Assembly (NCBI GenBank): GCA_048013815.1
Contig: CM106586.1
Span: forward strand, 14,074,001 to 14,137,868
Direction of reading: 5' to 3'
DNA: 63,868 bases
Source: Setoptus koraiensis
Lineage: Eukaryota; Animalia; Arthropoda
Positions 7,178 to 50,867 of this stretch are shown here, in pieces. The translations under genes were made by a program, and so were the position numbers. The stretch's first letter is position 1; each line of letters starts with the position of its first letter. Below the pieces are notes generated by a model that made no database searches, had not been told where the DNA came from, and worked only from the letters and a program-made list of their open reading frames with translations.

Positions 7178-7265
7178 ACTTACCTGTGTGATATATCGGT
7201 TGGCGGGTGTTGCGGGCGATTGCGGGCCATGGAAGAAGTAATAAGAGCATAATAAAAATGGTTAG
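7178..7265 (-). other. Candidate recursive splice site (ratchet point), junction 7184/7183
   Basis: Minus strand: CTAAC (7265-7261), catttttattatgctcttattacttcttcc, AG-free for about 75 nt, then acaCAG|GTAAGT, a perfect donor consensus. Confidence 0.65.
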
Positions 7266-8153
7266 ATATTGCGTTTTAAGCGGGGCCTTTATTTAAGCCT
7301 TTGTAGCGGCCAATATCTGGCAGGCGATATCTGGCAGGCGATATCTGGCGGCCAATATCTGGCGGCCAATATGTTGGCGTAAACGTTGGGCCCGTGCCAA
7401 CGTGTGTTTGCGCCAATATCCTTCGTAGCATAGGGGGCGTTTGTTGTTGTTGCTGGCCGAAATCAGTTCCGACAACAACAGCAACAACGAACATGCACCT
7501 ATATCTGTATTTATATCTGTACATATACAATATATTTATATATTTGAGCTTAGCCGGGGCTTAGCCGCCGCTCGCCAGATTATGTAACAATGTACAGGTG
7601 TGTGCAGTGTACATTGTTATGCAATGGTGGCCAGGTAGGCAACAAAATTTTGCAGTTAATGTGTGCGAGCTGCAGCCGATTTAGTGGTCGACTCGACACG
7701 GTTGCTCGGTGTGTCGATGCGCCCGGCAACGAGGGCCAAAGGGGAGCAAAGGTGCATTGTCTTAATTGGTTTTTGCTGCTCGGGTTTTAGATTTACGATA
7801 TTGACTAGTAACTAGATCATAGAGAGATTAAAATAGCAGCATAGCTCTGCTATTAGAGACAGAGAGAGAGAGAGTACAAAGTGTAGAGAATAGAGATTCG
7901 GCCAGAATTGTAGACCAAGTCACGAGTTGTGCCTGTCATAGATTCACCTGTTGACTCATCATTAATTATATCATCATCGTTTGATCGTGTGATCATTAGG
8001 CAGTTACCGGCAGTTTAGTGGCGCTGCTGCTTGTTCTCGCTCACACAAGTGTGCGCAACGTATGTCTCTAAAAATAAATCTTGTTATTACATAATATACA
8101 TACATAATATATTGCTGGTGGTGCCAGCAGTCACCTGTTCAGGTAATATCGTT

Positions 8154-8234
8154 AGTCGATGGAGCGAGAGTCGATAGGGCGAGAGTCGATAGGGCGAGAG
8201 TCGATAGGGCGAGAGTCGATAGAGCGAGAGTCGA
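8154..8234. repeat. 15-bp tandem repeat AGTCGATAGGGCGAG, about 5 copies
   Basis: Read directly. Confidence 0.9.
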
Positions 8235-11200
8235 ATGGCATGAGATTGGCAGAGATTGGCAGAAATCATTGGAATAATTGGACAGTGAGCGAGCCATTGA
8301 GCGAGAGCGGAGGGCATGATCTTACTGTTCATTGTGGTGCCGGCAACAACCGGCAAGTGTTGTTGTCGTTGTCGTTGTTGTTGTTGCTGATGCTGCGGCC
8401 AACTGCACAGCAACAACAGCCGCGGCAGCAACAACAGCCGCAGCAACAACAACAACAGCAACAACAACAACAGCAACAACAACAACAGCAACAACAGCCG
8501 CAGCAGCAAGATGAGATAAGATAAGACGCGGCGGATAGAAACAAAACAACAAGCGAGAAACAAAAATAAAAATTAAATGTCTTTGTTGTTGTTGTCGTCG
8601 TTAGGGCTATTCTCTCAATCGGTCATTACACACTGCACATTATCTATTTTATTATACGTTATCTTATCTACTGCTGCTGCCACAGTCACTAGTCGTCCTC
8701 TAATGATTTGTCGTCGTGATTGCGCAATCTCCATTGTCAAATGATTAACGCATATCGATAAGTCCGTCTCACTCTGCGGAGCTTGTCTCTGTTGTTGTTG
8801 TTGTTGCCGCCGCCGCCGCTGTTGTTGTTGTTGTTGTTGATAACAAACAGCTGATACTAATAGTATCAGCTGTTCTTGCTACACTAACATGTAAAATGTA
8901 GTAGTGTGATTGACCGTGTTATGGCGCAGTGTGGCCGCCAAGACCACATTGGGCTACTCTCACACAATTGCATCATTAAATAAGCGAGTTTTAAGTCGAG
9001 CAGCAGCTTACTACGTTATGTAACATGGGTTGCATAACATGACGCTTGTGTCCAAGATGGCAATTACGCACACTGTGATACAGTGACTGTATCGATCGGT
9101 GCCGCCTGTGTCGAGTCACTGCTATGACGGCTACGCGCGGGCCATCGTTGTTGTTGGTGCGGCCCGCCATCGTCCGGGCCGGCCGCCATGTCGGGCAGCG
9201 TCGAGCGGCCGATTGCGCCGGATGGGGCGCCTGACATTTGCTGCTGCGCTCGACACACTTGGCCACAATTCACATATTTTCGCCATCCCGGGTCTGGGTG
9301 CCGACGTGAGCCGATGTGAGCCGATTTGGGCCGACCGGCCATAATTAATAAACCATCGTGGGCAGACAGTGCCCAATGGACGGCACCAGTTTCAGTTTGA
9401 TTTCGCCGGCTCGCTCCGCCGCTCGGATCGGACGTTGGCCCGCTCAGATCAGTTGCGGCCCTCGGGCCGCTCGGTGGCCGGGCCCGGGCCGAGACACTAG
9501 CGCGTTGGCAAGCCAGCGAGCGAGATCATTTAATCTTCATCATCAATTACAGCAGACGTGCTCGTCGGTGGCTGCCAAGATTTTATCGCCGGCCCGGCAT
9601 TCGCAATACAAATTTTATATGCCATGTATACAAATGTTTTGTCTATGTACATATACAAAGGAACAACCGGTCACACAAACGCAAACAAACAAACAAACGA
9701 ACAAACAAACAAACGAGCGACGCGATCTTGGCCGCCGCCGCCGCCGCGGAACAATGGCCGGGCGGCCCACACGATTCCGCATGATTCCGCCGGCGTCCGG
9801 CGTCCGGAGCCGCACGGAGCCGCCCGAAGCCGGTGTCCCGGCAAGCGAGTCGGCCAAACCGAATTGGCACGCCAAAGTCCACTCCGACGACCGTGGCCGG
9901 CCGGCCGATCGAGGGCCGTCGAGCGAGCGCATGACTGGCGCTTGTTAATAGGTGATGATGGCCAATGATGCAAATGAAACAGCCGGCCAACGGCAGCTCG
10001 GCAAACAGCATTGTAAAACAATCAACAAGTTGTTTTAGCCGGCTCGCAACGCCAACTGCCAATGTCCGAAGCTATTAGCGTCACGGCGCGGTCGTTGCGC
10101 GCGATCACCTTGATTTTGCGGCTTTGCGACCAACGTTGGCCAAATTGAGCCGTCGCTGGCAAGCCGCTCACGGCCGGACACAAGTTTCAATTGAAAGCGC
10201 CGAGCTGTCGGTGTGACTCGCCGGCGATCCAATAATCTAATAATGGCCGAATAACAACTGCAAACATGACCGCCGTCGGTCGCCCGACCCACCGCACTCG
10301 GTGCCACCCGGCCGGCACCGCGCTACGAGACCGCGCTACGAGACCGCGAGGCGAGACCGCGCGAAGCGCGACCGATCGCATATCCGGCCCGCATGCCGCG
10401 CGCATCCGCGTCGCGCTGGCTGGCGTCCCGTCTCGGCGACAGGCTCTCGGTGGCGGGCTCTCGGCGGCCGCGTGGCCCGCGGTGGGCTCGGCTCGGCGGA
10501 CAATTATAATTTAGCCAGCGGCCAACAATATGCAAAATTAGACTGATAGATAAATTTGCGGATATGGCCACATTTTGTCGCGCGCGCGCCATTTGCAGCG
10601 TGCGCAGCCGGCACACGCACGGCGCAGCGCACATCGTGTGCCGTATTGACAATACGGTATTGACAATACGGTTTTGACAATACGGTATTGTGTCGTAGCG
10701 GGCCCCCGACAACGGCGCCGCGCCACGACGGGCGCACCGGGATGGCCGTGACCGGGGCCGGCTCACCGACGGGCCGGCGGTCGGGCCGGTTGGCCGGCGC
10801 GCTCGCTCGTGAGTGCGCTCATGCCCGCGAGATGGATGCAGAGATAAGCGAGCAAGACGAAGCCGTTGAGTGCGCTGCTCCACTTACTGGCCCGATGTTG
10901 TTGCCGTTTGCCTATTGGCTGCAATTCTCGCGAATTGCGATCCATTTAGGGCTTGCGAGTATCGCCGAAGCGTCGCCGTCGGACACACACAAAAAACATG
11001 TCGAAATGGCCAATTGGAGAACGGAATTTGCAAGACACACACACACGACGGGACGGTTGCGGCTCGGAGCGGACCCGCGGACAACAAAGAACCGGCGTGT
11101 GCGTCACACAGCAACGACAGCGGCAACCATGACTCAGCGACGGGCCGCGCTGACCACCGGTCGACCGGCGAGCGGCGCTGGCGCGGCCCGGCGCCGGCCG

Positions 11201-12116
11201 ACTGGCCGCGACCGACACAACAAGAGCGAAGCCCATGATTTAATGATGACCAGAAACATCGTTTGTATGACAAGTTGCAGCGGATAATTTATTGCATGGG
11301 CGTGTCTAGCCAAGAGCCAAGTTTCAGTTTGTGCGCAAGTGGCTGCTCGGGCGCCGCTCGCTGCCTGTTTGGCATTGTTCGTCGCCGCTGTCGGTTGTTG
11401 CTCGGCCGTTCGGTCGCCGGTCGCTCGGTCGCTGCGTCGGTCGGCCGTTCGGTTGCCCGGTCGCTGCGTCGCTCGACCGACCCGACGGCCGAGCCTCAAC
11501 AAGCGCGCCAACGACAGCGCCAACAACCATGAGACGACGACACCGTGAGCATGTTGTTGTTGCCGTTGTTGTTGCCGTTGTTGTTGTCGTCGTTGGTGTT
11601 GTTGCTGGCGTTGTTGCTGCTGTTGTTGTGTTGCCGGCGCAAGTTCATTAGCAGCGGCTTCTCACAGTTCGCGCCTGTTTTGCGATTCGCCGGCCGGCCG
11701 GCCGGCATTCCGACAACTCATGTCATGTTGCGAGCCGGGCCTCTCGTGAGCCGGCCGCGACGGGCCGCGTTCGCTCGTGAACGACAGAGACTCTCCATCA
11801 GAGACTCTATTAGAGAGGTCGGGCATGCCGCCGCGGCCGGCCCCGTACCCGTCGGGCAAGTGCAGGGTGCTGCACCAGTCAGGCCCGGCGAGCCGGTGCC
11901 GGTCGACGGCCACCAGCGTGCATTGTTGTGCGGTACCCATATCAATGATATGGGTATCAGGTTATCGCCGGCATTCATGTTGTGCCGGTACTGGCCGGCA
12001 CAACATGAGGCGAGCACGGCACGTTTCAGGCGGGCAAACTTGTGCGCCGGCCAGTGGACAAACAATAACAATCTCGCCGGCGATAATAATAATAATGATG
12101 CCGAGCACGCTCTCTC

Positions 12117-12189
12117 ACCTGGCGGCGTTACGTAACCTGGCGGCGTTGCGTAACCTGGCGGCGTTGCGTAACCTGGCGGCGTTACGTAA
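12117..12189. repeat. 18-bp tandem repeat ACCTGGCGGCGTT(A/G)CGTA, 4 copies, each junction forming TT(A/G)CGTAA
   Basis: Read directly. Confidence 0.95.
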
Positions 12190-13044
12190 GCTGCCAGCGA
12201 CCGGTCGAGTTGCACAAGACAAAAGAGCGGCCGGCAATCAGACGGATGAGATCGCGAATCGGATGGGACCAAATTGTGTGGCGTTGCGTCATTATTGAGA
12301 GAGCACTGTTGCCACTTCATCATGCCACGACATGCGGCATGATGAACAACAACAATGATAATAATGATAATGATAATAATAATGCGCCGTAATACACAGT
12401 AATACCGGCGACACATAATTGATATCGATGACGGGGTATCCGCTGGGTACGGGTCGGCCCGGTCGGTAATTGGTAAGCAGATGGCCGGCGATGCATGCCG
12501 GTCATGGCGGCCAACCGGCGGCGACACCGCTCAACGAGCGGCCCACCGGCAAGCGCGCACACAAATAGGCCGCCAGCAGACAATATGGAGCAGCTGACTG
12601 GATAGGCCGACATTCGAGAGCATTTATCCGCATTTATCTGCATTTATCCGCATTTGCGTACATGATTGGCTGGCACACAGTGTGCGCAAACGTGAACAAC
12701 AAATAAATTGCAATGAAATAATAATAATAAAATGATTCGCAACGAAATGAAATAAAATCGAAATGAGACCGAGCTCGAAACGAGCGGCCAACAGAGGCCG
12801 GCCGCGGGCCACACCCACGGTACAACCTTGCGCGGCTAATGAGACTAACCAGCTCTCGCTGCGAGCGCCAACAACAACGCCAACAACAACAGCAAGCACG
12901 TATGTTAATCTGTTAATTATAATCGTAATTAACATGGACACGATGATTATATTGATGATGATGCTGATGCTGCTCTCCATTTGTGAGTGCACTGTTTGCA
13001 AATTGAGAGAATAGGATAGTCGCAATAGGAGCACACGTCATACG

Positions 13045-13100
13045 CCCGACTGACTCGGCCCGACCGACTCGGCCCGACCGACTCGGCCCGACCGACTCGG
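13045..13100. repeat. 14-bp tandem repeat CCCGACCGACTCGG, 4 copies
   Basis: Read directly. Confidence 0.9.
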
Positions 13101-14214
13101 CCGGCCGCATCGGGCGACCCAAGCGGCAACTTGAGCCATTTGCATCAGGCATTTGGCACACAACACAACGGCAGCCGAGAGAGCAAACCTGTCGTCGTGG
13201 TTGCGCAATTGTTGGCGGCCACTCGCCTATTCGCTCCATTCCGGCGCTGCCATGAATCGAAGCCGCCGCGATGACGCAATCACTGACGCCGAATCAGCGA
13301 TTATTCGGCGCCAGTGATAATTCGAGCTTCGACGACTGCTTACATCGGTAACAACATTCGCGATATCGCGAAACAATTAGAATGACTCACATCACTGGCT
13401 TGGCACACATTGTGCAGCAGTGTGCTGCAACCAATCCGCTGCAGCCCCAAACCGGCGCACGAATCGGGTATCTTTTATTCATTGTTAGTACTAGATTTAA
13501 TCTTTGTCGGGCATCGAGTCGGCCCCATTTATTAGAAATCGGCCCAAGTTTAACAGTTTGAGTTTGCACTGACATTAGTACGGAATCAAAATTCAATTCA
13601 CAATTCGAGTTCAACTTGAACTGTTCAAGTGTTAGCTCGGTGATCGAAGAGAGCCGAGCGAGCCAGCAAATAGCCGAGTTGTGACACATAGTTATGCAAC
13701 AGCCCATATTGCGGCGCACATTTTAATGATGGTGGGTGCATCGATGAGTCAGCTGTGCGCATGATTCAAACAATTCCTAGAATCACTGTCACTCCTATCA
13801 TGCCAGTCACCAGCTGACAGCTGACCCATGACAGGTGACACATGACGACACATGACGGGTGACAGATGACAGATGAAAGAGGCGAGCGTTGCATTACGCA
13901 ATACATGGTTGTTGCGTTGCGTTCACTGCGCACTGCTCAACAACCACTGACCACTGACCACTGACCACAAGGCCAACACGCACAACATTTGCTGCATGAG
14001 CGGCCGATGACGCAAAAGTGTGCCCCCTGTGTGCATCATCGGCTCGACACGGCGACGATATTGCTGCTGCTGCTGCTGCAGCTAATTGGTCAGCGAGCCA
14101 ATTAAAGCGACTCGGAATTAGGGTGCCCAGAGGCAAGCCGAGAGTCTCGATCACGATTTAGCGCTCACTGTGTGTGCCAGCGACACTTGCAATAAGGCGC
14201 TTGCTTGATGTGAT

Positions 14215-14320
14215 ACGATCGCCAGTGGTCAGCTGACGATCGCCAGTGGTCAGCTGACGATCGCCAGTGGTCAGCTGACGATCGCCAGTGGTCAGCTGAC
14301 GATCGCCAGTGGTCAGCTGA
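14215..14320. repeat. 21-bp perfect tandem repeat ACGATCGCCAGTGGTCAGCTG, 5 copies
   Basis: Read directly; the repeat forms GTCAGCTGAC and CGATCG palindromes. Confidence 0.97.
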
Positions 14321-17300
14321 TGATGGCTATCGCGGGCACTGCGGCAATTGGCGTAGTGGCCGCCACTTGTTGATTGACAGCCACTCGATAATTAGCGACA
14401 CCTCAAATACCAAGTGACAGCCGTACGGTGCCGCATATAATTGGGGCTGCCGATTCACGGTGGCGCCAGTTTGGTGGTGGCGCGAACTGTGCAATGCGAT
14501 GACACAATAATTAGCACGCAACAAATTGTGTGCCGATGGTTGTGTGCCGATGGTGGTGTGCCGATTGTCGTGTGCAGCCACTTGCAGCAACAGCAAGACT
14601 CTCTGCTCCGGTCCGAACGGCATTCATGCCACGAATTTCATGGGCATGGGATGCGGCGGGAGGGAGATGGATCCATTAGGGAGATTGTTGGGCATGTTTG
14701 GCGCACAAGCGAACGACGACCAAATAACAAATGGCAACCGTTAATTATGCATAATAGTGGCGGCAATGGAGCATGCATGACGCAACCACCATTATCCGTT
14801 GATTGCGCGCACTGGCAGCGGCACTTGGCTGCGCATATGCGCATATGCGCATATCAGCGGAGCACAGACAGACGGACAGGTGGACGGGCGACCGGGCGAC
14901 CGCGAACGGGCAACCGCGACCGGGCGAACAGGTGATCGGGTGAACAGGTGAACGAGACATGGGAAACACACTTGCGATGGGATAGGCGCACATGACAGGC
15001 GCACACGACGGGCGCACACGACGGGCGCACAGAGCGGAGCACAAGGGGAGGCGCGATGCCGAAACGGCGCCGCTTTGAATGGCGCTGGCAGCACCCAAAC
15101 GCGGCCAAATGACCAGCGCTGCATCGGCTAATGATTGTCAAATTGACCACTGGCGCTGGTCATCATTAGCGCCGACAATTGCGCAGTGTGTGCGCGGCCA
15201 TTATCTCTGTGCCTTACATAACAATAATAATAATGCTATGATCTAATAATAGGTGATGTGTCCGTGTGTGTGTGTGTGTGTGCGACAAGTGCAAGAAAGT
15301 TACATAATCCATGGCCATGGCTGATTGTGTTGGCCTGGCGTGTCGTTAATTGCTTATTTGGCGCTTACTTTGCATTTGCACACGACGGCGTTGATTGCGC
15401 AACATGGGCAAACAATGCGCTCGACAATGCGCTCGACTATGTGACACAAATGTGACAAATATACCGGCAATAGCGCGCAGTTGGATGCAATTGCCGCCAA
15501 TTGTCGAGTTAGCAGCAAGTGTCTCGTTGTGCGGCTCTCTGTCTCGGCAGGTGAGTTGGCGCTGTTGTGGCAGTCGCAGTGAAAATGCGGCCAAGTCGCT
15601 GTCCGACTGTCACACTAATAAGCATGCACAAACAACCACGCCAATGACGCAATTTTGGCTGCCGCTTCCTATTTGGCGCCACTGCCCTATGGCCTGTGAT
15701 GCTGTCACAATCGTTGTGCAACACAATACAGCACGGCGGCCCATTGTGACGGTGGCAATGTTACGCATTACGCAACATTGTTGCATTGCTGCATTTTAAG
15801 TTGTAATAAGTTACAAGTTGCATTTTACAAGTTGCGACAGCCGCTCACTGTTGCTGTCAGCGCCGCTTGCGCCAGCAGCTAATTGAAGGCTCGCCGTCAC
15901 CGCGGCCGGTCTTGCCAGCCCTGCGACACACACATCAACTGTGGCCCGAGCGGCGCACAGGTGAGCGCAGGTGAGCTCGGGTGGGCCGAGCGGCGAGCGC
16001 CCCAACGTGAGTGTTACGCAAATAACAATTAAATGAGCAGTCAATTTATTCTCGGCGCTCGCCTCCGACGAGTAACATTGCGATTGTTTGTCGCTCTTTT
16101 GGCCACCACTTTGACTACTGCTGACCCATGCCATGTGGCCACGCTATCGGCATGCCATGGCCGCCGCACAGGTAGCCGGCCGGCCAGCCAGCACAGGTAG
16201 TTGCGCAATGAGCGTCTAATGATACACACACACAACGTATATATTATTATATATTACGTAATCTAATTGTGGAACAAGCGAAGCGTTGTCGCACACTTAT
16301 CATCAGCATCATGTTTGTCATGTAAATCGAGTTGCGCTCGTCGCCCATTCAGTCTCTTCTCCACTCACCTGTATTGTGGCTCGTCTGGCCAGCTTGGCAT
16401 ACACAACGTATACATTATGTATATATTATGTATATACATGATGTATATACTATGTGTGTATGGGGCATAATAGGTGGCGCGCTGTTCATTTTGATTTAGA
16501 TCGAGCGCTCACTTCATGTCACAATGGCCGGCCGGCCGAGCCGATTCGGCGGGCCGCCAATTGCTGCTTGCAAACGACCAAAACTGCGACCGACCAAAGC
16601 AAAAGCGGCCAAAGCAAAAACGGCCGAAGCAAAAGCGACCAAAGCAAAAATGACCAAGGCGAAAATGACCAAAACTGCGACTGGCCAAGGAACGCGCCGA
16701 CCGACCGACCGACCGGCCGACAAACATCGCGAATCAATTCTTCAGAGCGAGAAACAACCAACACATCAAAATGGCCGCTGCGCGCCGCGTCGGGCCGGTG
16801 TCAGGGCCGGCAAAAAGTCATTTCATTTTATACTCACTGTCTCTGTAATATAATATCATATAATGTTGTATAATAATAATGTTATACAATGTTATATAAC
16901 AACTACAGGTTTGCTCGCTCGCCTAACGCAAGCTCGCCCGTCCAGGCCGGCACAGCCGACGAAAGGTGTACGAATGGCCGATAGACTGGCCGAGCTCATT
17001 TTATTTTATTGCCTAATAGTTGGCCAGTTTCTGCTGGACAACAACAACACCAGCAACAACACCAGCAACAACAGCAACAGCCACAACAGCAACAGCCACA
17101 ACAGCAACTACAGCAACAACAACAGCAACAACAACAACAACTTGTAATTGTAATTGTAATCCTACAACTACACTGCTCGTTAGTTGTAAGCACAAGTTAA
17201 CTATCACAATTAGTTGTTGTTGTTGTTGTTGTAGCTCAACTTTATAATTAACACACTAAGGTCAATGTGCTTCGCGCTCCCCCGCAATGGCCCGATGGCT

Positions 17301-17913
17301 GCTGCGCCCAACAGTGCCGGCCAGAGTCGGGCCGCGCCACGCCTCCGCTCTCTAGCGGACCGATTTGGTCCCGTACTGGTTGGACCGGAAGTGGTCACAT
17401 CCAATGAGCAAGGCAAACCGACACAAGCCGACACAGGATGCCAACAGGTGACAACTGATTCGCGCTCCTGCTGCCGCTGCCTTTGCCTTTGCCGCCGCCT
17501 CGTCAGCTGATTGTCAGTTGGGCAACAGTTTGACAGTGCGCATGACCGTCGTCCACTGGCCACTGTGCGAGGGCCTCCCCTTTTCGGGCCTCACTGCTCG
17601 CTTCGGGCCCCGCTGCTCGCTTGTGGCCCGACAGCTGATCGGGCCCATCCAAGTACAAACTGTATAATGTTTCTCCGCAGAGGCACAGAGTTGCGTAATG
17701 GCGCACACACACACAAATAGTATCACAGTTTATTGCATCAATTGTGCGTTGCGCGATTGGCGTCACGTAATGCACGTAACGTCAACTGCGCACCGTTATT
17801 GTAACATTATTTCTACTGCCGTTGTTGCTGTTGTTGCTGTTGCTGTTGTTGTTGTTGCTGTTGTTGCCGTTGTTGTCGTTGCTGTTGTTGTTGTCGTTGC
17901 TGTTGTTGTTGTC

Positions 17914-17953
<40 letters not shown>

Positions 17954-22834: not shown

Positions 22835-22876
<42 letters not shown>

Positions 22877-25486: not shown

Positions 25487-25573
25487 CAAACGCAACAAAC
25501 GCAGCAAACGCAACAAACGCAACAAACGCAACAAACGCAACAAACGCAACAAACGCAGCAAACGTAACAAACG
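25487..25573. repeat. 9-bp tandem repeat CAAACGCAA, about 9.5 copies
   Basis: Read directly. Confidence 0.95.
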
Positions 25574-27404: not shown

Positions 27405-28342
27405 CGGTCGCTCCGCTTGGCGCCCGGTATTTTTCGGCGGCCCGCCAGCGAGCCAGCCGGCTTTCAATAGCGCGGCCGGCGGCACTTTACCGGCCGCTCG
27501 GATAGTGAAATTGCGATTGCGCTCACTAGGTGAACGTAATCAAGCTACTCACGACATACAGACCCAATGAGATCAGGCCAGACACATCGGGGCCCGACAC
27601 GCAGCCGCTAATCCAACCGTTGCAATGTATCCGCAAGCCACCCGGCGCAATATGCGACATTTTAACGGATTATAACTCTTATAGGATGAATTACCGGTAG
27701 CAGTTGCGCTCGCAAACAACAGTCGAGCTCAGTTGATTAGATGATTGACTGCTGGCCAGCTGCTAATATCCAATATGCTAACAAGCTTGCCAATGATATG
27801 TATTATATAATATCACAACAGCTGACTGGGTGGCGGATCTTGTTGGCTGGCTGTGAGTGGGCCAATGGGCAAATTAAATGTGGCCACTTTAACACGGCGA
27901 CAATGTACGCTGGCCATCGAGTGCGAGCCACTGCAAGAGTCGGGCCCCACTTGAACGACCGCCAATTCATTGATTGTTGATATAGTTGGCCGGCCCACCC
28001 GATAGTTTGCCGACAGTGCCCAGGGTACCGTCGCGAACTGCCCCGTCGCGGAGAGTGCCCCACTGCGGAGAGTGCCCCGCCGCAAAGAGTACCCAGGGGC
28101 AGAGATGCACCGGCGGCAGCGGCGCGGCTGCATCTCGGCGGCACGCAAAGATGGCCGGTTGTTCAATTAATTAGTAGTGAGAGGGGCGTTTGCTGTCCGT
28201 TCGCATTTGCTTACAATTGTTAGATCGGATCAGTTGTTGTCAGACGTTTGTGTTATTCGGTGGCTGTCGCGCGGGGCCAGCGAACAAGGAATAAATAAGG
28301 GGGGCACCAGACAATGCAAACGATGGATATAATGATAGTGAT

Positions 28343-28398
28343 ATTTACCTAAAATGACATGACAATAAAGAGGGGAAAGAGACGAAGAATAAGATTAG
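28343..28398 (-). other. Candidate recursive splice site (ratchet point), junction 28349/28348
   Basis: Minus strand: aaCTAATcttattcttcgtctctttcccctctttattgtcatgtcatttTAG|GTAAAT. Branch motif, about 45-nt AG-free pyrimidine tract, and an acceptor directly followed by a donor. Confidence 0.68.
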
Positions 28399-29055: not shown

Positions 29056-29068
29056 GTGTGTGCGTGTG

Positions 29069-29137
<69 letters not shown>

Positions 29138-35445: not shown

Positions 35446-35472
35446 GCTCACCTGCCAAATTGTTTGCGTTAG
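35446..35472 (-). other. Weaker candidate recursive splice site, junction 35452/35451
   Basis: ggCTAACgcaaacaatttggCAG|GTGAGC. The branch point is only about 17 nt upstream and the pyrimidine tract is minimal. Confidence 0.3.

Positions 35473-38211: not shown

Positions 38212-38213
<2 letters not shown>

Positions 38214-38284
<71 letters not shown>
38214..38284. repeat. Perfect (TG)n microsatellite, about 35 units
   Basis: Read directly. Confidence 0.97.
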
Positions 38285-38286
<2 letters not shown>

Positions 38287-41200
38287 CCATAAAGTAAAGT
38301 GCACATATGCGGCAGCCATTTGTATCGGCGGCGGTGGCGGCGACGGTGCAAGTGCACGGCCAAGTGCATGTATTTATAGCGACAATAACAACAACAATGC
38401 CGCCCGACAAACACCGCCGAGGATATAGGCGGCGCTCCCATAGGCGTCGGCGAGCCTCCCACAAGCCCGGCCGGGCGGCATCATGGGGGCCGCGACGGGC
38501 CGCGGCCATTATTATGGCGGTTATTATGTGTTATTAATGCAGCGAGCGGCCCGCTGCCCCTTTTGGAAAGCGCGCGCCGGAAATTGCCGGCCTAGGTGTG
38601 CCTCATTAGCTGCACTCTAGACTCTAGGAGTCGCTCGCTGGTGGCGCTCTCAGGAGGACACTTGGCCCCAACAGCTGAGCGGCGCCAGCAAGGAGAGTCG
38701 GCTGGCCAGACAGTCAGTTGCCGGCGTTTGACGCCAGGATGTGGCGCCAAACAGCGGCACGGATTTTCGGCCGGCAATCAAACGATTCCAACCGGCCCCA
38801 ATAATGCGGTCGCCCACACACACGCACACACACACACACGCAGACGAGGGCATGAAATTAAATAAATAAATAAGTGAGGAGAGTGTTGGACAAACAGCTA
38901 GCCGCTTCTGTATTGCATAATAGCAATAGTAATAATAATAATAATAATAATAACGCGCCATGATGCAGCGATCGCTGCAGCCCCGCCGCAACCGACAAAA
39001 TGGGGCCCCGGCGAGAATGGGGCCCATTTTCGCTGGGCCGCTTTGAGTTACCAGCTGAGCGCTCGGTTGGCAGTGACTGAAAGGGGCGCTGGAGGCAGCG
39101 AGCCTGCGCGCCGCCTGGCCCCCAGCGCACGGCGCGTCAAACCGCGCGCATACCCAGACCGGCGACGCGATCAGCTGAGCGCATTAAAGGGGCCCCGGTG
39201 TGTTGATGGGTTGCCCCTGGCGACGCAAACTCATCATGAGGGCCAAGCGCATATACGCGCAGCGGTGTCTAGACGCCGGCGCGACTGCACTGCAATGATT
39301 GCGTGATGGCTGGCCGGCCGATTGTCTGGCTAGCTCGGCATGGCGTGTAACATGATTGGGGCCGCCAGCCGTTGCACGATGGGGCCCCGTGTGGCCGAAT
39401 GAAGAGAATCCAAAAGCGGGCCAGACGGCAGACAGAGCGCAGACACACAAGCGCGCAGATTGGGGCCCGGCGCGGGTTTGTCCGCGCCAGCGGCCGCTAG
39501 CTGGCCAGCGGCGACCTTGAGCAACATCTCTCTGGCCGATAACGCCGATAACGCCGATTGCATTGCAGCGCCCGTCAGTTGGGCGCACTACGCTGGCCCT
39601 ATCGCGCCGGTTGTTGCCGAATGGGGGCCCGTGAAAACGAATGGTCGCGGCCGGCGACATGTCGAGCGCATCGGTGAATGGGCATTGCGGTTGGCCAATT
39701 TGGCGCCGGCAATGTCGTCTCGAAACGCGCTCCGCTCGGAGCAGCGTCGCGGTCGGAGCAGCGGTGCGGTCGGTTTATTGTCGCGGCCGCAGCGGTGGCG
39801 CGGTCGAGTGTGGGCCGAGCGAGAGCGCCGCCCGGCCGGCAGTCGCTGGCCGCAAAGGCCGCCGTCCGACGACATGTTGTGCCGAGACGATGATCGACAG
39901 CGCCTCTGCGATTGGCGATTGGCGATTGCGAGCGCCGGCCCGACGGAGCCGCGCGAGCGAGCGCCGCTGGCCGGACAGTGTTGCGCAAGAGCATATTTCG
40001 AGCTCTTTGTGTCGCTGTGGGCTGCGTCCAGTCGGCTGTTTCGTCGACGATTGTCGAGCGCTCGACACATGAGTCGGTGTGACGTAGGCTGCCAGCGCGA
40101 CCTGGCAAATCAACGCCGGGCAATTTTCGCCGGCCGTACCCGTCGGCCGAGCGACCGTCTGGCCGTTGGCAGCGTCGGCTTGACCGCTTGTGTCCGGCAC
40201 AGGCCGGCATTTTGAATGACGTGCGTCGTCAGAAGGGCCGGCCCGGCCAAGACTGCGGCCGGCGCTTGTTGTTGGCCGCGACGCTGGCCGGATCAACCGC
40301 TCGCCGGGATAAAAAGAGAGGGAGAGAGTTATAATTATCGATTACTGTTGCTCGCCCGGCCTGAATCAATATTTGCACTGCCGGCCAAGTGGGCCAACAA
40401 CAGCCGACGGCCCGACAGTCGGACAGCCCGACAAGCCGACGACAGGCGCACAACGGCGGCCGCCCGACGCAGATCAGCTGGCCGGCACGATCTGGCAGCT
40501 CGAGAGAGCTGGCAGCGGCGGCCAATTGGCCCTCTATTAGTCGCACTGGCCAAATGGCCAGTCCCTTTGTCGCTGGCTGTGTCGCTGTCCGGCGCTGACC
40601 GGCGCTGTTGACGGGCGAGCAAGTCTTTATTTGGCCCATCATGTCCCCGTCTGGCCGTCTGGCCGTCTGGCTGGCAGCGGACAAGAATCGATCATGACTG
40701 TCGTCTGGCGTTGTTGTTGGCGTTGTTGTTGGCGTTGTTGTTGCTGCTGTTGTTGCTGCTGTTGTTGTTGCTGTCGTTGCTGTCGTTGCTGTCGTTGTTG
40801 TTGGCGTTGTTGGCGTTGTTGGCGTTGTTGTTGGCGTTGTTGTTGGCGTTGTTGTTGCTGTTGCTGGCGCTGCTGTCGTCGGCGAGCCACGGCCAGACTT
40901 TGCACAACAATAACAACATTTTTGCTTGGCCTGTTGTCAGCTTTGGCTGTCCGGCTGTCGCTTGCCGCTCGCACTCCAAACAACTGGCAGCAAAGAGCCG
41001 CGCTTAGCCGGCACCGACCGTGCGGCAAAATTAGAGATAGCAGGTGGGCGTGTGCGGCGGCCGCAACCCGGACTGGCGCGGTTGTCGCCAGTGTCGGCGG
41101 TCGCCGGCCAACAACGAGCAAATAATATCGCCTTCTGTTCCTGCCGGCGGCACAGCCGGCGCACAGAGTGTCGGTGGCGCTTCCGAAGCAACGTCGAAAC

Positions 41201-44200
41201 GAAGCAACGTCGAAACGAAGCGCCTCCAATCGAGGCGCCTCCGAATCGGAGCGACGAAGCCATTTCAACGCTGGCAGCCGACAAATGCTCAAATGAGCCG
41301 GCCCGGCCGACATAACAAGTGGCTCGGCTCAAGTGGAGTGACGGCGGCCGGCCCACGACACACAATTCGCGACGCAATCCGCCGGCCTCGTCTATCATCC
41401 GACTCTCCATTGCGCTCTCCATTCTGCGGCCACTGCAGGCCAAAGACAGAAATATTGCCCCCTCTCTCTCTCTGTGTGTCTCGATCGACAGTTGTTGTTT
41501 TTTACAAATTAATTCAACACACACACACACACTATATAAGTTATATTATATAAGTTATATCGTATAAGTTATATAACACTTATACAACATAGCTGCCTTA
41601 CATAACACTTGGCGTAACGCATTATATAACACATTGCGTAACACACACACACACATATTATGAGCACATGGTTAATAATATAATGGTTATGATGGTCAAC
41701 GGCGGAGACTTAGGCGACACACGATGGCCATTTCATTACTTTTGCCGGCCGGCCGGCCGGCCGACTGGCCGGCTGCGCACACGTCAAGCTAGCCCTTTTT
41801 GTGTTATTATTGTTGTGCCATTGTAATTGTAATGTAATATTATATAACAATCCGCTTGGCATTGTTGTGTTACGACGATAACAATGTGTCTTGCGAGACA
41901 CACAAAACGCTCCATTCGAGCCGGCTGGCCGAGCCGCTCGAGCCGCGCTGACCGGGCCGCTCGAGCCGCGCTGACCGGGCCGGCCGAAACGAGCCGAATC
42001 GGCTGGAGCGGCCGAAGCGGACGGAGCGACTGGAGCGGCCGAAGCGGACGGAGCGGCTGGAGCGGCCGAAGCGGGCCGTCCGGCGATGCGTCGGCTCGCG
42101 TGTGCATGCCGGCAAGTGATAATAGGCGCACAGTAGCGCCTTCTGTGCGAGTCACAGCGGTCGCGTCGAGTCACAGCGAGCGAGTTTTGAGCAAAAAGTT
42201 TGAGCAAAAAGTTTGCCAAACTTTGCCGAGTCGGCGCCGAACGGTCGGGCCGCCTGTCGTTGGCGGACCGGCCGAACGGTCAGAGCCGCTTGTCGGCCGA
42301 CGAGAGGCGGCCAAAAAATACCGATCCATCGTCCGTGTGCGATGATATTATTATTTGAGACAATTGACCCAAAATGAGCGAGCCAGCAGCGGGCCAAACT
42401 AAATGTATAATATTTGCCAAATGCGCACTGCACAGGAAGGGGGTCGATAATGAGCATGCACCAGGCGCCGGCTGGCCGGGCAGAGGAGCGCCGGTCAGCG
42501 AGTATCGGCCGTTGATGGTTTAATATCGGCAGGTAGACAGACAAATTGGCCAACGAGAGCAGCCTCGCTGACCGGTCTGGGCACGCCGGCTCGGCAGCAG
42601 CTGTGTTTGGCGCAGTGGATTGAGTTGCCATCGTGCTACTCACTATTGGATAACACACTGCTGTTGGTCAGCACACTGTTGCGTAACTCACTGCTGCCGC
42701 AAACACACAGGTGAGTCGCGGCACAGGTGAGCGCCGACCATAGTGGCCGCAGTGGTCGCAGTGGCCGCAGCGGCCGCAGTGGCCTATTATTTGCGGCGCG
42801 TCGACCTGTTTGTTTCTGCAGTGTGTGCCGGCCGACAGGTAGAGCGAGCGCAAGCTGGAACAGGTAGTGTTTTAGCCGGACAGCAGCAGCACACATTGTC
42901 GGCGCCGTCCAACAAAACCCCCAAAGACACGGCGCGCCAGTCAGCTGATCGGGCCGGCCAGACGAGGCGTCGGTGAACATTGTGTAAGATTGTTGCTGTT
43001 GCCGTTGCTGCTAATGCTGCTGCGTTGTTTGCGTCGGCCGAGCCGCCAAAATTGACCCTCTCCCATAACTATCATCATTAACTGTGTGGCGCATGTGACG
43101 TCCATTATTCCGACATTATTGCGCAACAGCGCCAGCAGTGACAACCGCGCTACATATTGGCGGGGTGGCTGCGTTCACCTGTTCACTCAACCTCTCACTC
43201 TCTGTCTTCACTTGGCTTCTTCTCTCGCCCGTCCGTCCGTCCGTCCGCTTGTCCGCTCGCCCGCTCGCCAGTTTGTCCGCTCGTCCGCTCGCCCGCTCGC
43301 CCGTTTGTCTGTGACTAACTGCGTCTGTGTGAGTGCGATCATTTTTATTTTATCACTTGCCCACTTGTGCCACTTGCCAGCGCCAGCGCCAGCGCCAGTG
43401 ACGCAACACCGGCCGCCACGCCGATGCCAATCGCTGCTGCGGCCAGCCGGCACAGCCGATGCAGCAAGACCAAACAAGAACAAAGAAGCCGTTGAGTGGA
43501 GTGGACGCCATTCACCTGTTGTGGCCGACACACACACACACGGCCGGAGAGTGCCGGCCGGCCGGCGAGCACATGACACAACAGCACAAGTTACATAACA
43601 CACACGCACACAGGGCTTGGTGTGTGCAAAGGAATTAGTAGTTAGGCCGGCTGCTGACCGCAACCACCACTGACAACAGCTCAACAGCTGATTGTCGGCC
43701 AAAACAATCAGCTGATGCGACGGCGTAATGACGTAACAATTGCACATGGTGCTGGAATGTCTGCCGGCCGGTGCGTCTCGCTTATGATTCATTCGTCGTC
43801 GTCGTTGCCGTCGTTGCCGTTGTTGGCGTCGTCGTTGCCGTTGTTGGCGTCGTCGTTGCTGTTGTTGGCGTCGGCGTTACAACCTGGCATCGCGCAGCAG
43901 ACTCGCCACAGTTTTCTTCGCAACAGCAACAACAGCAACAACAGCAACAGCAACAACAGCAGCAGCATCAACAACAACAGCAGCAACAACAAGTGCAACA
44001 GCGAGCGCTAAGAGACAACGAAATTGCACAGGCAGACAATTGATACATAGTTGCGCTTTAAACAAGAGACGAAGCCCCGCTTCCTGCCCCCCCCCCCTTC
44101 TCGACAACAACCTGTTGGCTGGCCGGGTATTCATAGGTGGAAAAAATAAATGGCTGCAGCGGCAGTCAGAGGCAGCAGTCAGAGACAGAGGGCAAAAAAT

Positions 44201-46470
44201 TGGCTTTCTTTCATATTTTCATCATCATTATTATTATTACTATTACTATTATTATTATAATAATTCATCTATTGCCGCCGAAACTGTTGCTAAGCAACTA
44301 TATCCACTGGCTGGCCGCGCCGGCCGGCCGGCCGGCTGACCATTGGCAACGCTCGCACGGTGTCGCTGCGTTTCGAAGAATGAAGGACACTCTCTCGACT
44401 TGTCTCCCTCTCTCTCTCTCTCTGGCTATTGGCAACTTCTTTGCTATTGGCCACGGCATGCAGTGTTGCATCATCCGACATGGTTGCATCAGCGAGTCGG
44501 CGGATGATGCAACGTCTATGACGACGACGACGAATAATGTTGGCTAATGTTGGCATTGGCCAATTGACCAAATGCAATGACTTACACTCAGACAGACACA
44601 CACTCAGACAGACATACACACAGTCAGACGACGTTTGAGACACCAAAGTAATATGACGCAATAATAACGTTGATATATTATGAGAGATGATGACGCAACT
44701 GGCATGGGATGATGGCGCAAATGGCGGCGCAAACGCAACATGGCCCAGTCAGCCTAAAGGCTGGCCAATTGTTGATCATTGATCGCAACTGATCGACTTT
44801 GTTCATCTCATTTATCGCCATCTCGGCCATTTGCGCTCGCGTGGCCCGTACGCTGGCCGCGCTACCGGCCCGCGAGCTACGGCCGGCCAGTCGGGCTACG
44901 CCGGCCGGCAAGTGGGCAATCAATGCGCTAAGCGATCGAGCCGACAACCAATGATCAACGAGCTAAGCGAGCCGATAAGTGGCGCGACAAAAGTGGGCCT
45001 CACAATGAATTGTCAGTGTCGACGCTCAGGGGGCGCCCCAGTCGCCGCTCTAACAGCGCAACAGACAGTGCATCATGACGCTGTGGCGAAAAATTGATGG
45101 CGCAAAAATAATGGAAAATAATGTAAAGGTGGCCGGCCAACGTTTTGTTCCGCGACTGTCTAACCACGTTCGAGGCAGCAACGACAGCAACAAATTATCA
45201 GCTGGCCGAGCAAATGGGATCAGCGCCGAAGCGATAATGCTTGCCGAGCGGCCAACAAACAATGAGCGAGAGAACAACAACAACAACAACAACAACAACG
45301 CCAACAACAACCTGTTGCTCCACGGCTGCCTCTTTCGATCATCTTCAGTCATGTGTGCGACGACGACTCGGGACGATGACGACCATGATGCAACATTACA
45401 TAACAGGTAAATGTGTGTGTGCGCGACTATGATATAAGAGAAGATAAACACACAGCCGGACGAACGCTGCACTTGCAGACAGGTAAATAAAGGCCGGTCG
45501 GCGGCCAGCGACAGTTCGTGTATCACGCTCGGGCGATTTTTTCGTGGCTCGTTCCGCCGGCGGGGGCGTGTGGCCATCAGGCAACAGGAAACTGCCGGCT
45601 GCTGTGCGTCGGCTACGCGAGCGGCTCACCTATCGCGGCCACTCACTGCCGGCTGCTGCCGGTGCGATGAGCGAATGAGCGACAAGGAGAAAAATTGATA
45701 AAATTGATAAAGTTGTGACTGGTGCACAGGCTAAAAATGAGCCGAATTGGCGGCCGGTAATTGGTCAGTCGGCGCCCGTCTGGCCAGTCGGCCAATCCGT
45801 CCCGGCCGACAGTGTCGGGCCGGCTCAGAGCGATACCCGCTCGGCCGATATCGCGCACTGTCCAATTTGCGATTTGCATAACTTTGCTCATTCTGTCGGC
45901 CGCTCGCCTGGCAGCGAACAATGCATCGCAAGACCGCCGAGAGGACACAATTAGTTTGCTCCGGCTATTCGGCCGTTCGGCCGCTTGGCCGGTTGGGTGC
46001 GGCCGGGCCGCCATTAGAGCGCCGTCTGGCCGGCCGGCCAGTGAGCGAGCCGGCCGCTCGCCTGGCAGCTAGTTAGACATGACAGGCGGACATGACGGCT
46101 TCGCTGGCAAGCCGGCTATTGGATTAGCAGCAAGCCGGTAATTTTATTATTTCGCACACACATGTATACATTACATAACAACGGCAACAGCGACACGCCA
46201 CAACAACCACAACCGCAACCACCGCACAAAGACAGCTGACAGGTTTATCGGATCACCTGTGCTGTTGTGTGGCAACAGCACAATAACGAATCTGGCCAAA
46301 AACTGGCAAAAACGATCTCTATGCAGGCCAATTTGTCTTGTTGGCTGGCCAGCATTTTTATTGCGCCGCAGGTTTGTTAGTTAGGCGCAACAAAGGCCGC
46401 TCGCGACAACAGTGCGACCGTTATCGTTGCGCAACTCGGCCGCCACTGACACAAGTTGTGCGTCGCTTGT

Positions 46471-46570
46471 GCGTTGGTTGTGCGCCGGTTGTGTGCCGGT
46501 TTTGTGCCGGTTGTGCGCCAGTTGTGCGCCGGTTGTGCGCCGGTTGTGCGCCGGTTGTGCGCCGGTTGTA
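46471..46570. repeat. 11-bp tandem repeat GCGCCGGTTGT, about 9 copies
   Basis: Read directly. Confidence 0.9.
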
Positions 46571-47254
46571 CGTGCGCGGCTTGTGCCGGCTGTCGCCATT
46601 CGCGGGGCGAACCTTTTTCCATCCGCGAAACCCTTCACATTGTCAAGTTCACAATGCCTGGCGAGACTTGAAAATATTAATTTCAAATACAAAATGTTGG
46701 GCCGCCAGAACCCAATTCAGTCATGGGGCGACCGCGTTCCACAGGAGCCATAGAGGGCGCTGTGACAAGGCGGTGCTCACAAGTGACAGTGACTCACAAC
46801 GTGCGGGCCGGCTCGTCGGGCCGGCGGGCCGCGTGCGAGCCACCCAGTCGCTGGCTGGGGCCGCGGATTTGGGCCGCCCACAGCCAGCGAGCGCTTTGTG
46901 GCAGCGCGCGGCTCGTTGTCGTCTGCCTGTTGTCATGTGGTGCCAGGCCGATGTGTCGCGCGGGGTCATGACCTGTCAAAATTGCGGCCGCTTTCTCCGC
47001 CGTCCATATCATACATAGTTATGTAATATTTTTAGCTGCTATTATTAGTATGCGAACAGCTGCTGGCGCGCCAGTCGTTGCGCAAGCAGCAACAAAGCCG
47101 CCGATGATAACATGTGCCAATTGTATCATATTGTCACCTCTTATCTGGCCGAGCCTGAGTGTGTTGCGCCAACAATGCACCGACAGTGTTTGCGTCAGAC
47201 AATCGTCAGCCACATCAATGTTGCCACTTTGTGCCCACGCTGTGCCCGCATCTG

Positions 47255-47355
47255 GCCGCATAGTGCCCACATTGCCCGCATAGTGCCCACATTGCCCGCA
47301 TAGTGCCCACATTGTGGCCGCATTGTGCCCACATTGTGCCCGCATTGTGCCCACA
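47255..47355. repeat. Composite 10/20-bp tandem repeat TGCCCACATTGCCCGCATAG
   Basis: Read directly. Confidence 0.85.
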
Positions 47356-49808
47356 TTTCGCGCCGAGTGCGGCGGTCGTGCCCGCGCCGTGCCCGCGCCG
47401 TGCCCTCGCAACCGCGTACCGCGCCATATGAGCCGGCCCCCGGCAGGTAAACGGGCAAGTTCAACGGTCGCCAGAGAGCGCATCGGCGGCTGGGCGCGCG
47501 ATTACCGCTGGCGCGGTCTCGCCAGCGATTATCGCGGTCTCGCCAGCGATTATCGCGATCTCGCCAGCGAAGGGTGGACACTGGTGAGTCACCAGTTTGG
47601 AATGAGCTCGCCCGTCAGCTTGTGAACGCACGTCAACGCGACTGACGCTCGTTTGCGTGGCGCCGCCGCGAGAGGCGCGCAACGCAAACAACGATCGGCC
47701 GGCGATGATCAACAAGTGACATTGTTGACAAATAATCGGCTCATAATGCCACTTGTGTTCGCTGTGCCGGCGGCGGCGGTTTTGGCACAGTTTTGGCGGG
47801 CGCAATTTGGCCATGGACGGCGGTAACGGTCGTGGGCGCGAACGAATCGTTTCTTCTATCGCTCGACAAATGGCTGGCACTTTGCGTGGCCAATGCAAGT
47901 GAGTCGGGCCTTGTTGTCGGTGCACTTGTTTGCATTGCTGTGTTTGCGGCTCAGGTGACAAGTGACAGAACAGAGCGAGCGATTGTTGTTGTTGTCGGAG
48001 TGGCAGTCGATTTCACACTTGATAAGAGCCTGTGGCCCGGCGACCGGCCGGCCCGATAAGGAGAGTGAGACGCAACAATCGGCGCAACCGCCGACCGGCA
48101 TCGAACGCCAACCACTTGTGGCTGCGGTTGCGCTTACAGCCGAGAAACGACAACAACAGCGGCAACAGCGACATCAGCGACATCAGCGACAACAACGGCA
48201 GCGACAACAACGGCAGCGACAACGGCGACAGCGACAAATTTCCGAGAGCAAAGCTCGGCCGGCCGGCTGCCGGCAAGCGAGGACAGGCTGGCAAAAAATG
48301 TCACCGCTTGCGCATTGTTGCCGTGACAACACCGACAGCCGCAACGACGCACAGTCCGATTGTGTCGCCGTCGTCGGTCGCCGTTGTCGCTGCCGGCGGT
48401 GGCCACAACAACAGCGACAACAGTGACAGCACAACAACAGTGACAACAGCGACAACGGCCACAACGGCCACAACGGCCGATTCCGAATTTCGAACTTGGT
48501 CGAAATTGGTCGGCAGTCGCGGCCGGCGAGGTTGCCCGGCCAGACGGGGAGCGTGAGCAAACATTGAGTTGGAGTCGATGTGCTAGGTGATAATTGTTTG
48601 CGATTTGTGTGCCATTTTGACCCGCTTGCACGGCGCTGTTGCGCGCTGCCGGCCCGCGACCGGCCGGCCTGCCGGCCGGTTGCTCGGTTGGCGGGTTGCG
48701 GGTTGCGGCGGCCCGCGGCCACATCTCGGCGGCGGGCGCCCACCAAGACACGCCGCCGACACTCATTTATACATACGTCTTACAGCAGTATTATGGCGGC
48801 CGCTAACGGCAATATAATATAAGTTGCTGGCGGTTGCGCAAGCCAACAACCATTAAGGCGGCGACAAGTGTCTGGGCATGTTGGCAAACAGCGTGATTGC
48901 ATTAATTGCATAAATCAATTGTCGCCCCGCTGACAGCTTATGATCGATCGTTGAGCACATTAATTGCTCACTTCACTCTCTGCGCTGCCTTCTTTGTTCG
49001 GCCGTTGCTGTTGTTGTTGCGGCCGTTGTTGTTGTTGTTGCTGCTGCTGTTGTTGGTGTTGTTGTTGCTGCTGTTGTTGTTGTTGGCGCTGTTGTTGGCG
49101 CTGTTGCCGTTTGGCAGTTGCCTTGGCACTTCGCTGGCTGCCAGTGGCGCTGACAGGCCGCCGAGCAGCTGATCGGCCGACAGCGGCCGCGCCAAGGCCG
49201 CTCGGTCTGGCGGCCCGACGCGCTCATGAAATCGATACTCATGCTCGCCCATGTTCGTTGGCGGAGCCTCGGCGAGCTTCGGCGAGCTTTGGCTCGCTCG
49301 CAGCTCGCTCGCAGCTCGCTCGCAGCCCGAACAATCATCGGCCAAACAACAATCTTTCTGTTGCGCCGGGCGGCAAGTTGGCGCGCGACTTGATGCATCA
49401 TCGATAATATGCGATAATTATTATGCAAACAAAAGATGATTCGCTTCTTTGTCGCTGCTCGGCGTTGGCCGACGCTGTCGTTGTTGGCGTTGCTGTTGCG
49501 CCGCGATTATCAGACACATTATTATCGCCGTGGCAAGATGCTGGCGCGCCAACAAGCGACGGGCCGGCGCTGCTCGCAGCCACGACTAACAAGTTTGCGC
49601 CGACGACAGCCAAGTGCGACAAGGCCAAAAGTAGAGGCTTGGTGTGATGCAGTTGTTTGGTTTACTTTGATTTGGATTGGATTGGATTGTTTCGCTGGCT
49701 GCAGCCAGCGAGCGACGGTGTGCGTGTGTGTGTGTTGTCAGTCAGACGCTATTTTGCTAGTTTGTTTGTTTGTTGTTGCTGGTGGCGCAACTGGCGTCGT
49801 GGCCGCTG

Positions 49809-49857
<49 letters not shown>

Positions 49858-50199
49858 GTTGTTGTTGGCCAAGCAATCGACAAATCGATCATCGGGATCA
49901 CAAGTTGACAAAGACAAACTTTTTCCTACTTCTTTTGTTTTTCACTGGCCTTTGTTTATTTACTTAGCCAGCTAGCAAGTTTGCTGCTTGCAAGAGCTGC
50001 GTCTTGGCGACCCGTCCAACGTCGAGCCAACGTCGACTGGCGGCGCCAGTGGCTGACGAATCGAGTCTCGGGCTCCACTATCGGGCTCCACTATCGGGCT
50101 CCAGTATGGGCCTAGTGGCGCGCTTAATTGTGCTTGTGCCCGCTCGCCAGCTTATATTATCTGCTGCTGCTGCAGCTCATATTATCCGGCTCGTATTAG

Positions 50200-50280
50200 C
50201 TGGCGCGTATTAGCTGGCCCGCAATGGCTGGCCCGCAATGGCTGGCTCGCAATGGCTGGCTCGCAATGGCTGGCTTGCCG
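50200..50280. repeat. 14-bp tandem repeat GCAATGGCTGGCTC, about 5 copies with drift
   Basis: Read directly. Confidence 0.8.
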
Positions 50281-50867
50281 TGGCTGGCTTGCGTTGGCGG
50301 ATGCGGGGCGCCCATTTAGCCGGCCGTGTTTTAGCGCTGTCGACATCGCATTCAGCGTCGCATAGGGCACAATCAATGAGCTATGATAGCTGCGACTGCT
50401 TAAATTTTACGCCACACAAACATACGCGTATAAATACGCGGATAAGCGCAAACAGACGCCGAGACACGCCGAGCTGCCTACAGACAGATGCAGATGAGCC
50501 AACGGAGACGAAGGGGAGCGAGCGAGAGAGCGCGAGAGCGAGCGAGAGAGCGCGAGAGAACGCGAGAGAGAAGCCAAAAACGGTAGCCCAAATGGAAATG
50601 CTAAAATACAAAACTAACTCTTCTCCTCGGCTCGCCTCGCCGTGCCACAAACGGGCTGCTAATTCAAATTCGCCGAGACACACAGCCGAGACACAGCCGA
50701 GACACAGTGGAGCCAGATTAGCTAGCTGGCTGTTTATAATCGCAAAAATATGCATAATAATCATTTTGGTTGGCACATGCATTTTATTACGCTTTGACGC
50801 TCGGCTAACATACGCGCCGTTGCTTAACAAGATAGATAGAAAGTCGCAAACGACCCTAGGCACTCAC

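Follow-up and report, generated by a model that had tools for sequence, protein, structure and literature searches.

The 611-codon gene and the stretch beyond it

The window analysed here is a stretch of 63,868 nt of contig CM106586.1 with a G+C content of ~57%. On its minus strand a 611-codon coding exon ends at a putative 5' splice site, and the 50.9 kb beyond that site (positions 1–50866) hold two junctions, on the same strand, at which an acceptor-like AG is followed directly by a donor-like GTAA. Juxtaposed sites of this build are candidate ratchet points, from which a very long intron would be removed stepwise by recursive splicing. A sequence-only reading had proposed such stepwise removal for this gene; after the analysis described below, the proposal plausibly stands as a cheaply testable candidate and not as a finding. 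The features on which the argument turns, including the intron of a neighbouring GATA factor gene that served as an in-window control, are the following (ORF, open reading frame).

50868–52700, minus strand: 611-codon coding exon of low complexity (polyQ/N/T), from ATG 52700–52698 to AAG 50870–50868
50862–50867, minus strand: putative 5' splice site AAG/GTGAGT in phase 0, the G of its GT at 50867; a consensus donor 9 nt before an in-frame stop
50783–50858, minus strand: in-frame TAG (50858–50856) and AATAAA (50788–50783), the alternative end of a single-exon gene
28343–28398, minus strand: ratchet candidate 1, TAG/GTAAAT, junction 28349/28348; CTAAT at 28398–28394 (−45), 90% pyrimidine tract, AG-free for 59 nt
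28209–28348, minus strand: possible cryptic recursive exon of 134 nt (28348–28215), with an in-frame TAA at 28255–28253 and a downstream GTAAGC at 28214–28209
7178–7265, minus strand: ratchet candidate 2, CAG/GTAAGT, junction 7184/7183; CTAAC at 7265–7261 (−77), T-rich tract, AG-free for 101 nt
2586–2655, minus strand: third acceptor of full build, with no GT after its AG; CTAAT at 2655–2651, AG at 2587–2586, then a 58-codon phase-0 ORF and a stop
55502–55757, plus strand: intron of the GATA gene, GTGAGT...CACAG, 256 nt; CTAAC 106 nt before the AG, AG-free for 109 nt

Across the 1.9 kb from 52787 to 50856 the minus strand has a single open frame, and the encoded protein reaches a C-terminal ...KPKRK at the AAG of the splice site. 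A consensus donor within 12 nt of the end of an ORF is unlikely to arise by chance (~1e-3, a rough estimate). The protein matched no Pfam family and nothing in the PDB, and no homologue was found in a word-indexed search of 5.8 G proteins or among 1.84 G HMMER representatives. In the Atlas its N-terminal stretch, MDDCMAAMVLMSLGS, pointed weakly to Sin3-binding (SAP25-like) clusters. The N-terminus may resemble a KLF-type Sin3-interaction motif, a guess that we do not count as evidence.

Beyond the donor, nothing recognisable as coding sequence was found. No Pfam domain was found in the ORFs of 1–50866, either in the 139 that reach 118 aa or more on the two strands or in the 143 minus-strand ones of 72–117 aa. 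Codon-usage outliers were tried as candidate coding sequence and rejected, only (AAC)n microsatellite ORFs having been flagged. Scans for Rfam families and tRNAs gave no match. Micro- and minisatellites lie densely along the stretch (78 rows of Tandem Repeats Finder output); strand skews, counts of AATAAA and counts of U1 sites were uninformative. Real coding exons between the candidate sites, which the sequence-only reading had named as a refutation, were not found in the Pfam and phase-0 exon scans. With nothing coding recognised in 1–50866, two readings of the stretch are left, an intron of great length and a gene desert. Most likely it would form all or most of a single intron, at least 48–51 kb long, of the minus-strand 611-codon gene. 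A span of at least 50.9 kb that lacks recognisable coding sequence would be unusual should the genome be as compact as one would judge from its intronless genes.

Candidate juxtaposed splice sites on the minus strand

On re-reading, the donor at 50867 and the minus-strand AG/GTAA junctions at 28349 and 7184 lie where the sequence-only reading had placed them, and its segments of about 22.5 and 21.2 kb measure 22,518 nt (50867 to 28349) and 21,165 nt (28348 to 7184). Its count of three minus-strand AGGTAA sites below 50.9 kb was also correct (28350, 7185 and 3665). The restriction of that count to GTAA is arbitrary: both window donors are GTGAGT, and the broader motif AGGTRAG occurs six times on each strand. 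The CTAAY motif and AG-free pyrimidine tract ascribed to both junctions are present in full at 28349. At 7184 the motif and the AG-free zone are present and the adjoining tract is not; the T-rich tract lies distally, just past the branch motif, and the 45 nt beside the AG are C/A-rich and 55% pyrimidine. The build in which a 3' splice site adjoins a 5' splice site is thus found at 28349 in its usual form and at 7184 only in the distal-branch form of the GATA intron. With the exon ending in AAG, ligation to either junction would give AAG/GTAAAT or AAG/GTAAGT and so regenerate a usable-looking 5' splice site. Downstream of 7183 the next GTGAGT lies ~250 nt away.

To judge these junctions against chance we scored 1–50866, which contains 4,719 AG sites (2,296 on the minus strand and 2,423 on the plus strand). 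The strict rule required CTAAY, then 30 nt with a pyrimidine fraction of at least 0.65 and a T fraction of at least 0.4, then the first AG, then GTRA. The acceptor part of this build, a first AG after CTAAY and a T-rich tract, occurs at three minus-strand sites (28350, 7185 and 2587) and one plus-strand site. In two of the three minus-strand acceptors GTAA[AG]T follows at the AG; with GTRA behind 0.9% of all AGs, the binomial P is 2.5e-4. The complete rule therefore finds two sites on the minus strand and none on the plus strand, with 0.01–0.03 expected. When the tract rule was dropped, GTRA followed 4 of 37 minus-strand sites and 0 of 30 plus-strand sites (P = 3.6e-4, expected 0.16–0.34). Shuffles within blocks of 30, 50 or 100 nt, by which local composition is preserved, yielded 0.010–0.017 strict sites per strand; no more than 1 of 600 runs contained two (P(≥2) ≤ 0.002). 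Neither the rest of the window nor 96 kb of control loci contained a strict site.

An unbiased scan of all 1,024 5-mers in AG-free zones placed CTAAC at the top of the list upstream of minus-strand AG/GTRA (3 of 21 vs 14 of 2,296, p = 2.8e-4); the best plus-strand 5-mer reached only 0.005. By a score for branch point and AG exclusion, no other juxtaposed site in the 50.9 kb, whichever the strand, comes as high as 28349 and 7184. The claim of the sequence-only reading that none of the plus-strand AG/GTAA junctions it had checked has full acceptor architecture was borne out (0 plus vs 2 minus). The comparison of antisense frequency that it had proposed gave a divided answer, in that the full architecture is confined to the minus strand and raw motif counts are equal on the two strands. 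A strand-specific excess of full acceptor/donor junctions is what recursive splicing predicts, and it is hard to explain in untranscribed DNA; the statistical support for the two sites is moderate.

A matrix of the fly/human type, which weights a proximal pyrimidine tract, ranks the sites differently. It scores 28349 at 9.9, 7184 at 5.5 and the best plus-strand site at 4.5. If acceptor and donor halves were independent, 0.014 sites as good as 28349 would be expected; this null under-predicts the weaker plus-strand sites ~3-fold, which raises the P value for 28349 to ~0.03–0.06. The matrix view and the first-AG view thus disagree, and the acceptor of the GATA intron decides which of them suits this genome.

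The GATA acceptor is the one verified acceptor in the window. Its proximal 20 nt are 55% pyrimidine and form no proximal pyrimidine tract, and it has a distal-branch, long AG-free build like that of 7184. Over the whole window, both strands taken together (128 kb of strand sequence), the strict acceptor rule picks out just 8 sites, and this acceptor is one of them. The GATA intron suggests that the host genome uses first-AG scanning from distal branch points. Because the build of 7184 matches that of this verified acceptor, the first-AG view is favoured over the fly-type matrix for the host genome.

Two weaker junctions, the ones that come in when the tract rule is dropped, were also noted on the minus strand.

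35446–35470, minus strand: CTAAC, 17 nt, CAG/GTGAGC, with its AG site at 35453; no pyrimidine tract
8129–8155, minus strand: CTAAC, 17 nt, CAG/GTGACT, with its AG site at 8136; AG-free for 184 nt

Beside the second of these, a pyrimidine-rich 15-mer is repeated in tandem for 5.4 copies (8154–8234, minus strand), and its mutated last unit creates the CTAAC of the 8136 site.

A proposed long recursive intron and its alternatives

The best explanation of the stretch, which we hold with evenly divided confidence, is that 1–50866 is a long intron with recursive sites at 28349/28348 and 7184/7183. In a first step the 5' splice site of the exon would be joined to the AG at 28349 through a CTAAT branch point 45 nt upstream, and the ligation would create AAG/GTAAAT as a new 5' splice site. 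In a second step this site would be joined to the AG at 7184 through the CTAAC 77 nt upstream, by first-AG scanning as in the GATA intron, creating AAG/GTAAGT, which would then be joined to the true acceptor at 2586 or beyond the window. Use of the donor, transcription across the region and every splicing step are inferred. The odds are again even that at least one site, 28349 before the other, functions as a ratchet point within a long intron that really exists; that both 28349 and 7184 work is unlikely. The AG at 2586 could be the terminal 3' splice site, a lead only, in which case it would add a last piece of 4.6 kb and a 58-codon tail. A full three-step recursion through 28349, 7184 and a terminal 2586, by which a 48.3-kb intron would come out in three pieces (22.5, 21.2 and 4.6 kb), is distinctly unlikely.

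What has been observed is the motifs themselves, with their strand specificity and an excess above chance, a stretch in which no coding sequence is recognisable, and a resemblance to the verified acceptor. The evenness of the pieces, stressed by the sequence-only reading, did not survive: it comes from two intervals, of which the second has the site itself as its end point. We rejected even spacing as evidence, since two random intervals agree within 6% ~3% of the time and the comparison was made post hoc. The proposed stepwise removal itself came through in part, the sites being strand-specific and above chance, whereas the intron is putative and a stop and AATAAA follow the donor.

Several points weigh against a recursive intron. 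Three codons beyond the donor the ORF comes to its stop, which an AATAAA follows after 68 nt, and a good acceptor-like AG at 50731 would define an alternative intron of 137 nt that adds three codons. No convincing phase-0 coding exon follows any acceptor-like AG within the window, a pattern search of the minus strand did not find the C2H2 zinc finger that had been guessed, and, with the 611-codon protein lacking relatives, nothing demands further exons or a missing domain. The genome appears very intron-poor, its nitric oxide synthase (NOS) gene being without introns. Among the sites themselves, the donor at 28348 is GTAAAT, without G at +5, and 7184 is at chance level on the proximal-tract matrix: its donor 9-mer is perfect, its acceptor no better than background, and 0.28 such sites would be expected per strand, or more once calibrated. 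The equal AGGTRAG counts belong here as well, as does GTRAGT preceded by AG (2 of 19 on the minus strand, 2 of 17 on the plus strand). The acceptor criteria were set post hoc, so that the P values are optimistic, perhaps ten-fold, and become ~1e-3 to 1e-2 when discounted. Finally, no RNA run among those searched holds the exon, only DNA-like or unlabelled contig sets having turned up, and DNA-like contigs that hold it pass the donor unspliced.

The alternative that survives best, somewhat unlikely in our judgement, is that the motifs are chance occurrences in a gene desert. The 611-codon gene would then be complete, either as a single exon that ends at TAG 50858–50856 and is polyadenylated beyond the AATAAA at 50788 or with one short intron at its 3' end whose acceptor is the AG at 50731, and the 50 kb would be intergenic or regulatory DNA beside developmental regulators (the GATA gene and the 611-codon gene), its AG/GT sites unused. 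The stop and AATAAA directly past the donor, the acceptor-like AG at 50731, 136 nt downstream, the lack of a 3' exon in the window and the orphan protein are what such a gene would look like. Micro- and minisatellites abound in the stretch, the raw counts of AGGTRAG and of AG-preceded GTRAGT are alike on the two strands, and plus-strand CAG/GTGAGT motifs at 15549 and 42709 obtain fair scores. A gene desert does not readily account for two full-build sites on one strand where ~0.01–0.03 are expected, for CTAAC as the top 5-mer upstream of minus-strand AG/GTRA, or for a consensus donor so close to the end of the ORF.

The contigs from sequencing runs also bear on the gene desert. Run X2 has a flat depth of ~140–230 away from simple repeats, as DNA would. 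In the unlabelled public run X3 a contig (50074–51090) spans the donor unspliced, and over window positions 47600–53400 contig depth is 2.9 at 47.8 kb and climbs within 5 kb to a peak of 88 on the exon. This profile fits unevenly amplified DNA or, if the run is RNA, a transcript fading within 3 kb; the unspliced contig and the drop in depth within 3 kb would in the latter case resemble the tail of a 3' untranslated region, as a gene desert would have it. The 55.7 Mb of X3 contigs are compatible with genomic DNA or with RNA mixed with host-plant transcripts, and because the run can be typed neither as RNA nor as DNA its depth pattern decides nothing.

It is improbable that the sites belong to other, unannotated minus-strand transcripts, in which 8136–7184 would be an ordinary non-coding exon of ~950 nt, with its acceptor at 8136 and its donor at 7184, and the segment from the acceptor at 28349 to GTAAGC at 28214 an alternative or poison exon. 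The arrangement of CTAAC, 17 nt and CAG at 8136, 951 nt upstream of the perfect donor CAG/GTAAGT at 7184, invites this view, as does the GTAAGC 134 nt after 28348. Neither the 8136–7184 nor the 28349–28214 interval has an ORF or Pfam signal, and ordinary exons leave unexplained why AG directly precedes GTAA at two sites (~0.009 each). That the long intron is real and its AG/GT sites are silent pseudo-sites, the intron being removed in one step or through other intermediates, is very improbable: the sub-optimal donor GTAAAT at 28348, the lack of a proximal pyrimidine tract at 7184 and a literature search that found no chelicerate recursive splicing (a weak negative, its listing swamped by taxon terms) speak for it, and unused sites give no reason for a strand-specific excess.

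The host genome and known recursive splicing

The genes on the far side of the 611-codon exon lie on the plus strand.

55301–55501 and 55758–56804, plus strand: GATA factor gene in two exons, with the 256-nt intron between two zinc fingers
57879–62015, plus strand: NOS gene of 1,378 codons, intronless, a single ORF with all four Pfam domains

In the interval from the GATA stop to the NOS start, an AG at 57034 (plus strand, tccag/GTTGCT) has the full branch, tract and first-AG build; it might belong to a 5' untranslated intron of NOS, or might be a chance occurrence in AT-rich DNA.

The nearest named relatives of the NOS protein are from a scorpion, acariform mites and ants, at 61–64%, and fish obtain a similar score. 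About 18 metagenome or Logan NOS proteins score 65–69%, and those fetched (P0002 and P0019) are also single ORFs. The intronless NOS of the window and its relatives at 65–69% suggest a clade with massive intron loss. By NOS similarity and the intronless NOS gene, the host is probably an intron-poor mite; a fair guess would be a very intron-poor one of the eriophyoid group (PMC7738191). Two metagenome contigs (L001 and L004) carry an intronless NOS beside Tmp39, RRM, short-chain dehydrogenase and ribosomal S9 genes. On the NOS-bearing relative contigs (L001–L005, NOS 66–69% identical) neither the GATA gene nor the 611-codon ORF found a match, and with both unmatched beside related NOS genes, local synteny has been lost.

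If RNA were to confirm the sites, recursive splicing would be extended from insects, the sea urchin (where the evidence is computational only) and vertebrates to chelicerates. Its presence in a host whose genes are mostly intronless would argue for the mechanism as an old and general answer to very long introns, not a fly speciality. The three-step recursion, if true, would give the chelicerates their first case of recursive splicing and would mean that the mechanism survives in a streamlined genome with distal branch points and AG scanning. Confirmed sites would also be examples that combine a distal branch point with a long AG-free spacer, a kind that fly-trained matrices would miss. The scan for CTAAY, T-rich tract, first AG and GTRA is very specific here and could serve to annotate long introns, and the direction of transcription in gene deserts, of this species.

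Zero-nucleotide recursive splicing in Drosophila is said to have been described in work by Hatton in 1998, Burnette in 2005 and Duff in 2015. Further accounts of the fly system are those of Pai 2018 (PMC6110457) and Joseph 2021 (PMC8605326). Drosophila ratchet points occur in most introns longer than 40 kb, commonly close to the midpoint or at the thirds (PMC6110457). They split introns into chunks of similar size (PMC6110457), which lessens the novelty that the sequence-only reading saw in regular spacing in an animal whose neighbouring genes have almost no introns. Sense-strand enrichment of ratchet sites in large introns has been reported for fly, mosquito, bee, beetle and sea urchin (Shepard et al. 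2009, PMC2773006), at sense rates of 0.5–2.2 per 100 kb (2.2 in the fly) vs ~0.1 antisense.

Like the cases of Shepard et al. 2009 (PMC2773006), the stretch has an excess of (y)nncag/gtaagt-like sites on the sense over the antisense strand, here 2 per 50 kb. That study pooled hundreds of annotated introns and included no chelicerate, whereas here a single locus is considered and its intron is inferred. The vertebrate recursive-splicing exons (RS-exons; Sibley 2015; PMC6110456) act through exon definition and are often expressed, whereas the 134-nt segment here is known by its sequence only. The two share an acceptor directly before a donor, and the possible cryptic exon (28348–28215) likewise has a downstream donor that may compete and a premature stop.

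The closest comparison is with the ratchet points of Drosophila. The stretch differs from them in that the branch point of 7184 lies 77 nt upstream, with a long AG-free spacer and no proximal poly-pyrimidine tract; in that the donor at 28348 is GTAAAT and not GTAAGT; in that it is known from DNA sequence alone; and in that the host is probably an intron-poor mite. It resembles them in its abutting 3' and 5' splice sites around AG/GT, on the sense strand of a putative intron longer than 40 kb in a regulator-like gene, and in a density of about one site per 20–25 kb, the first near the middle. As in the flies of Joseph et al. (PMC8605326), there may also be, at 28349, a short cryptic exon with a stop and a downstream donor of its own.

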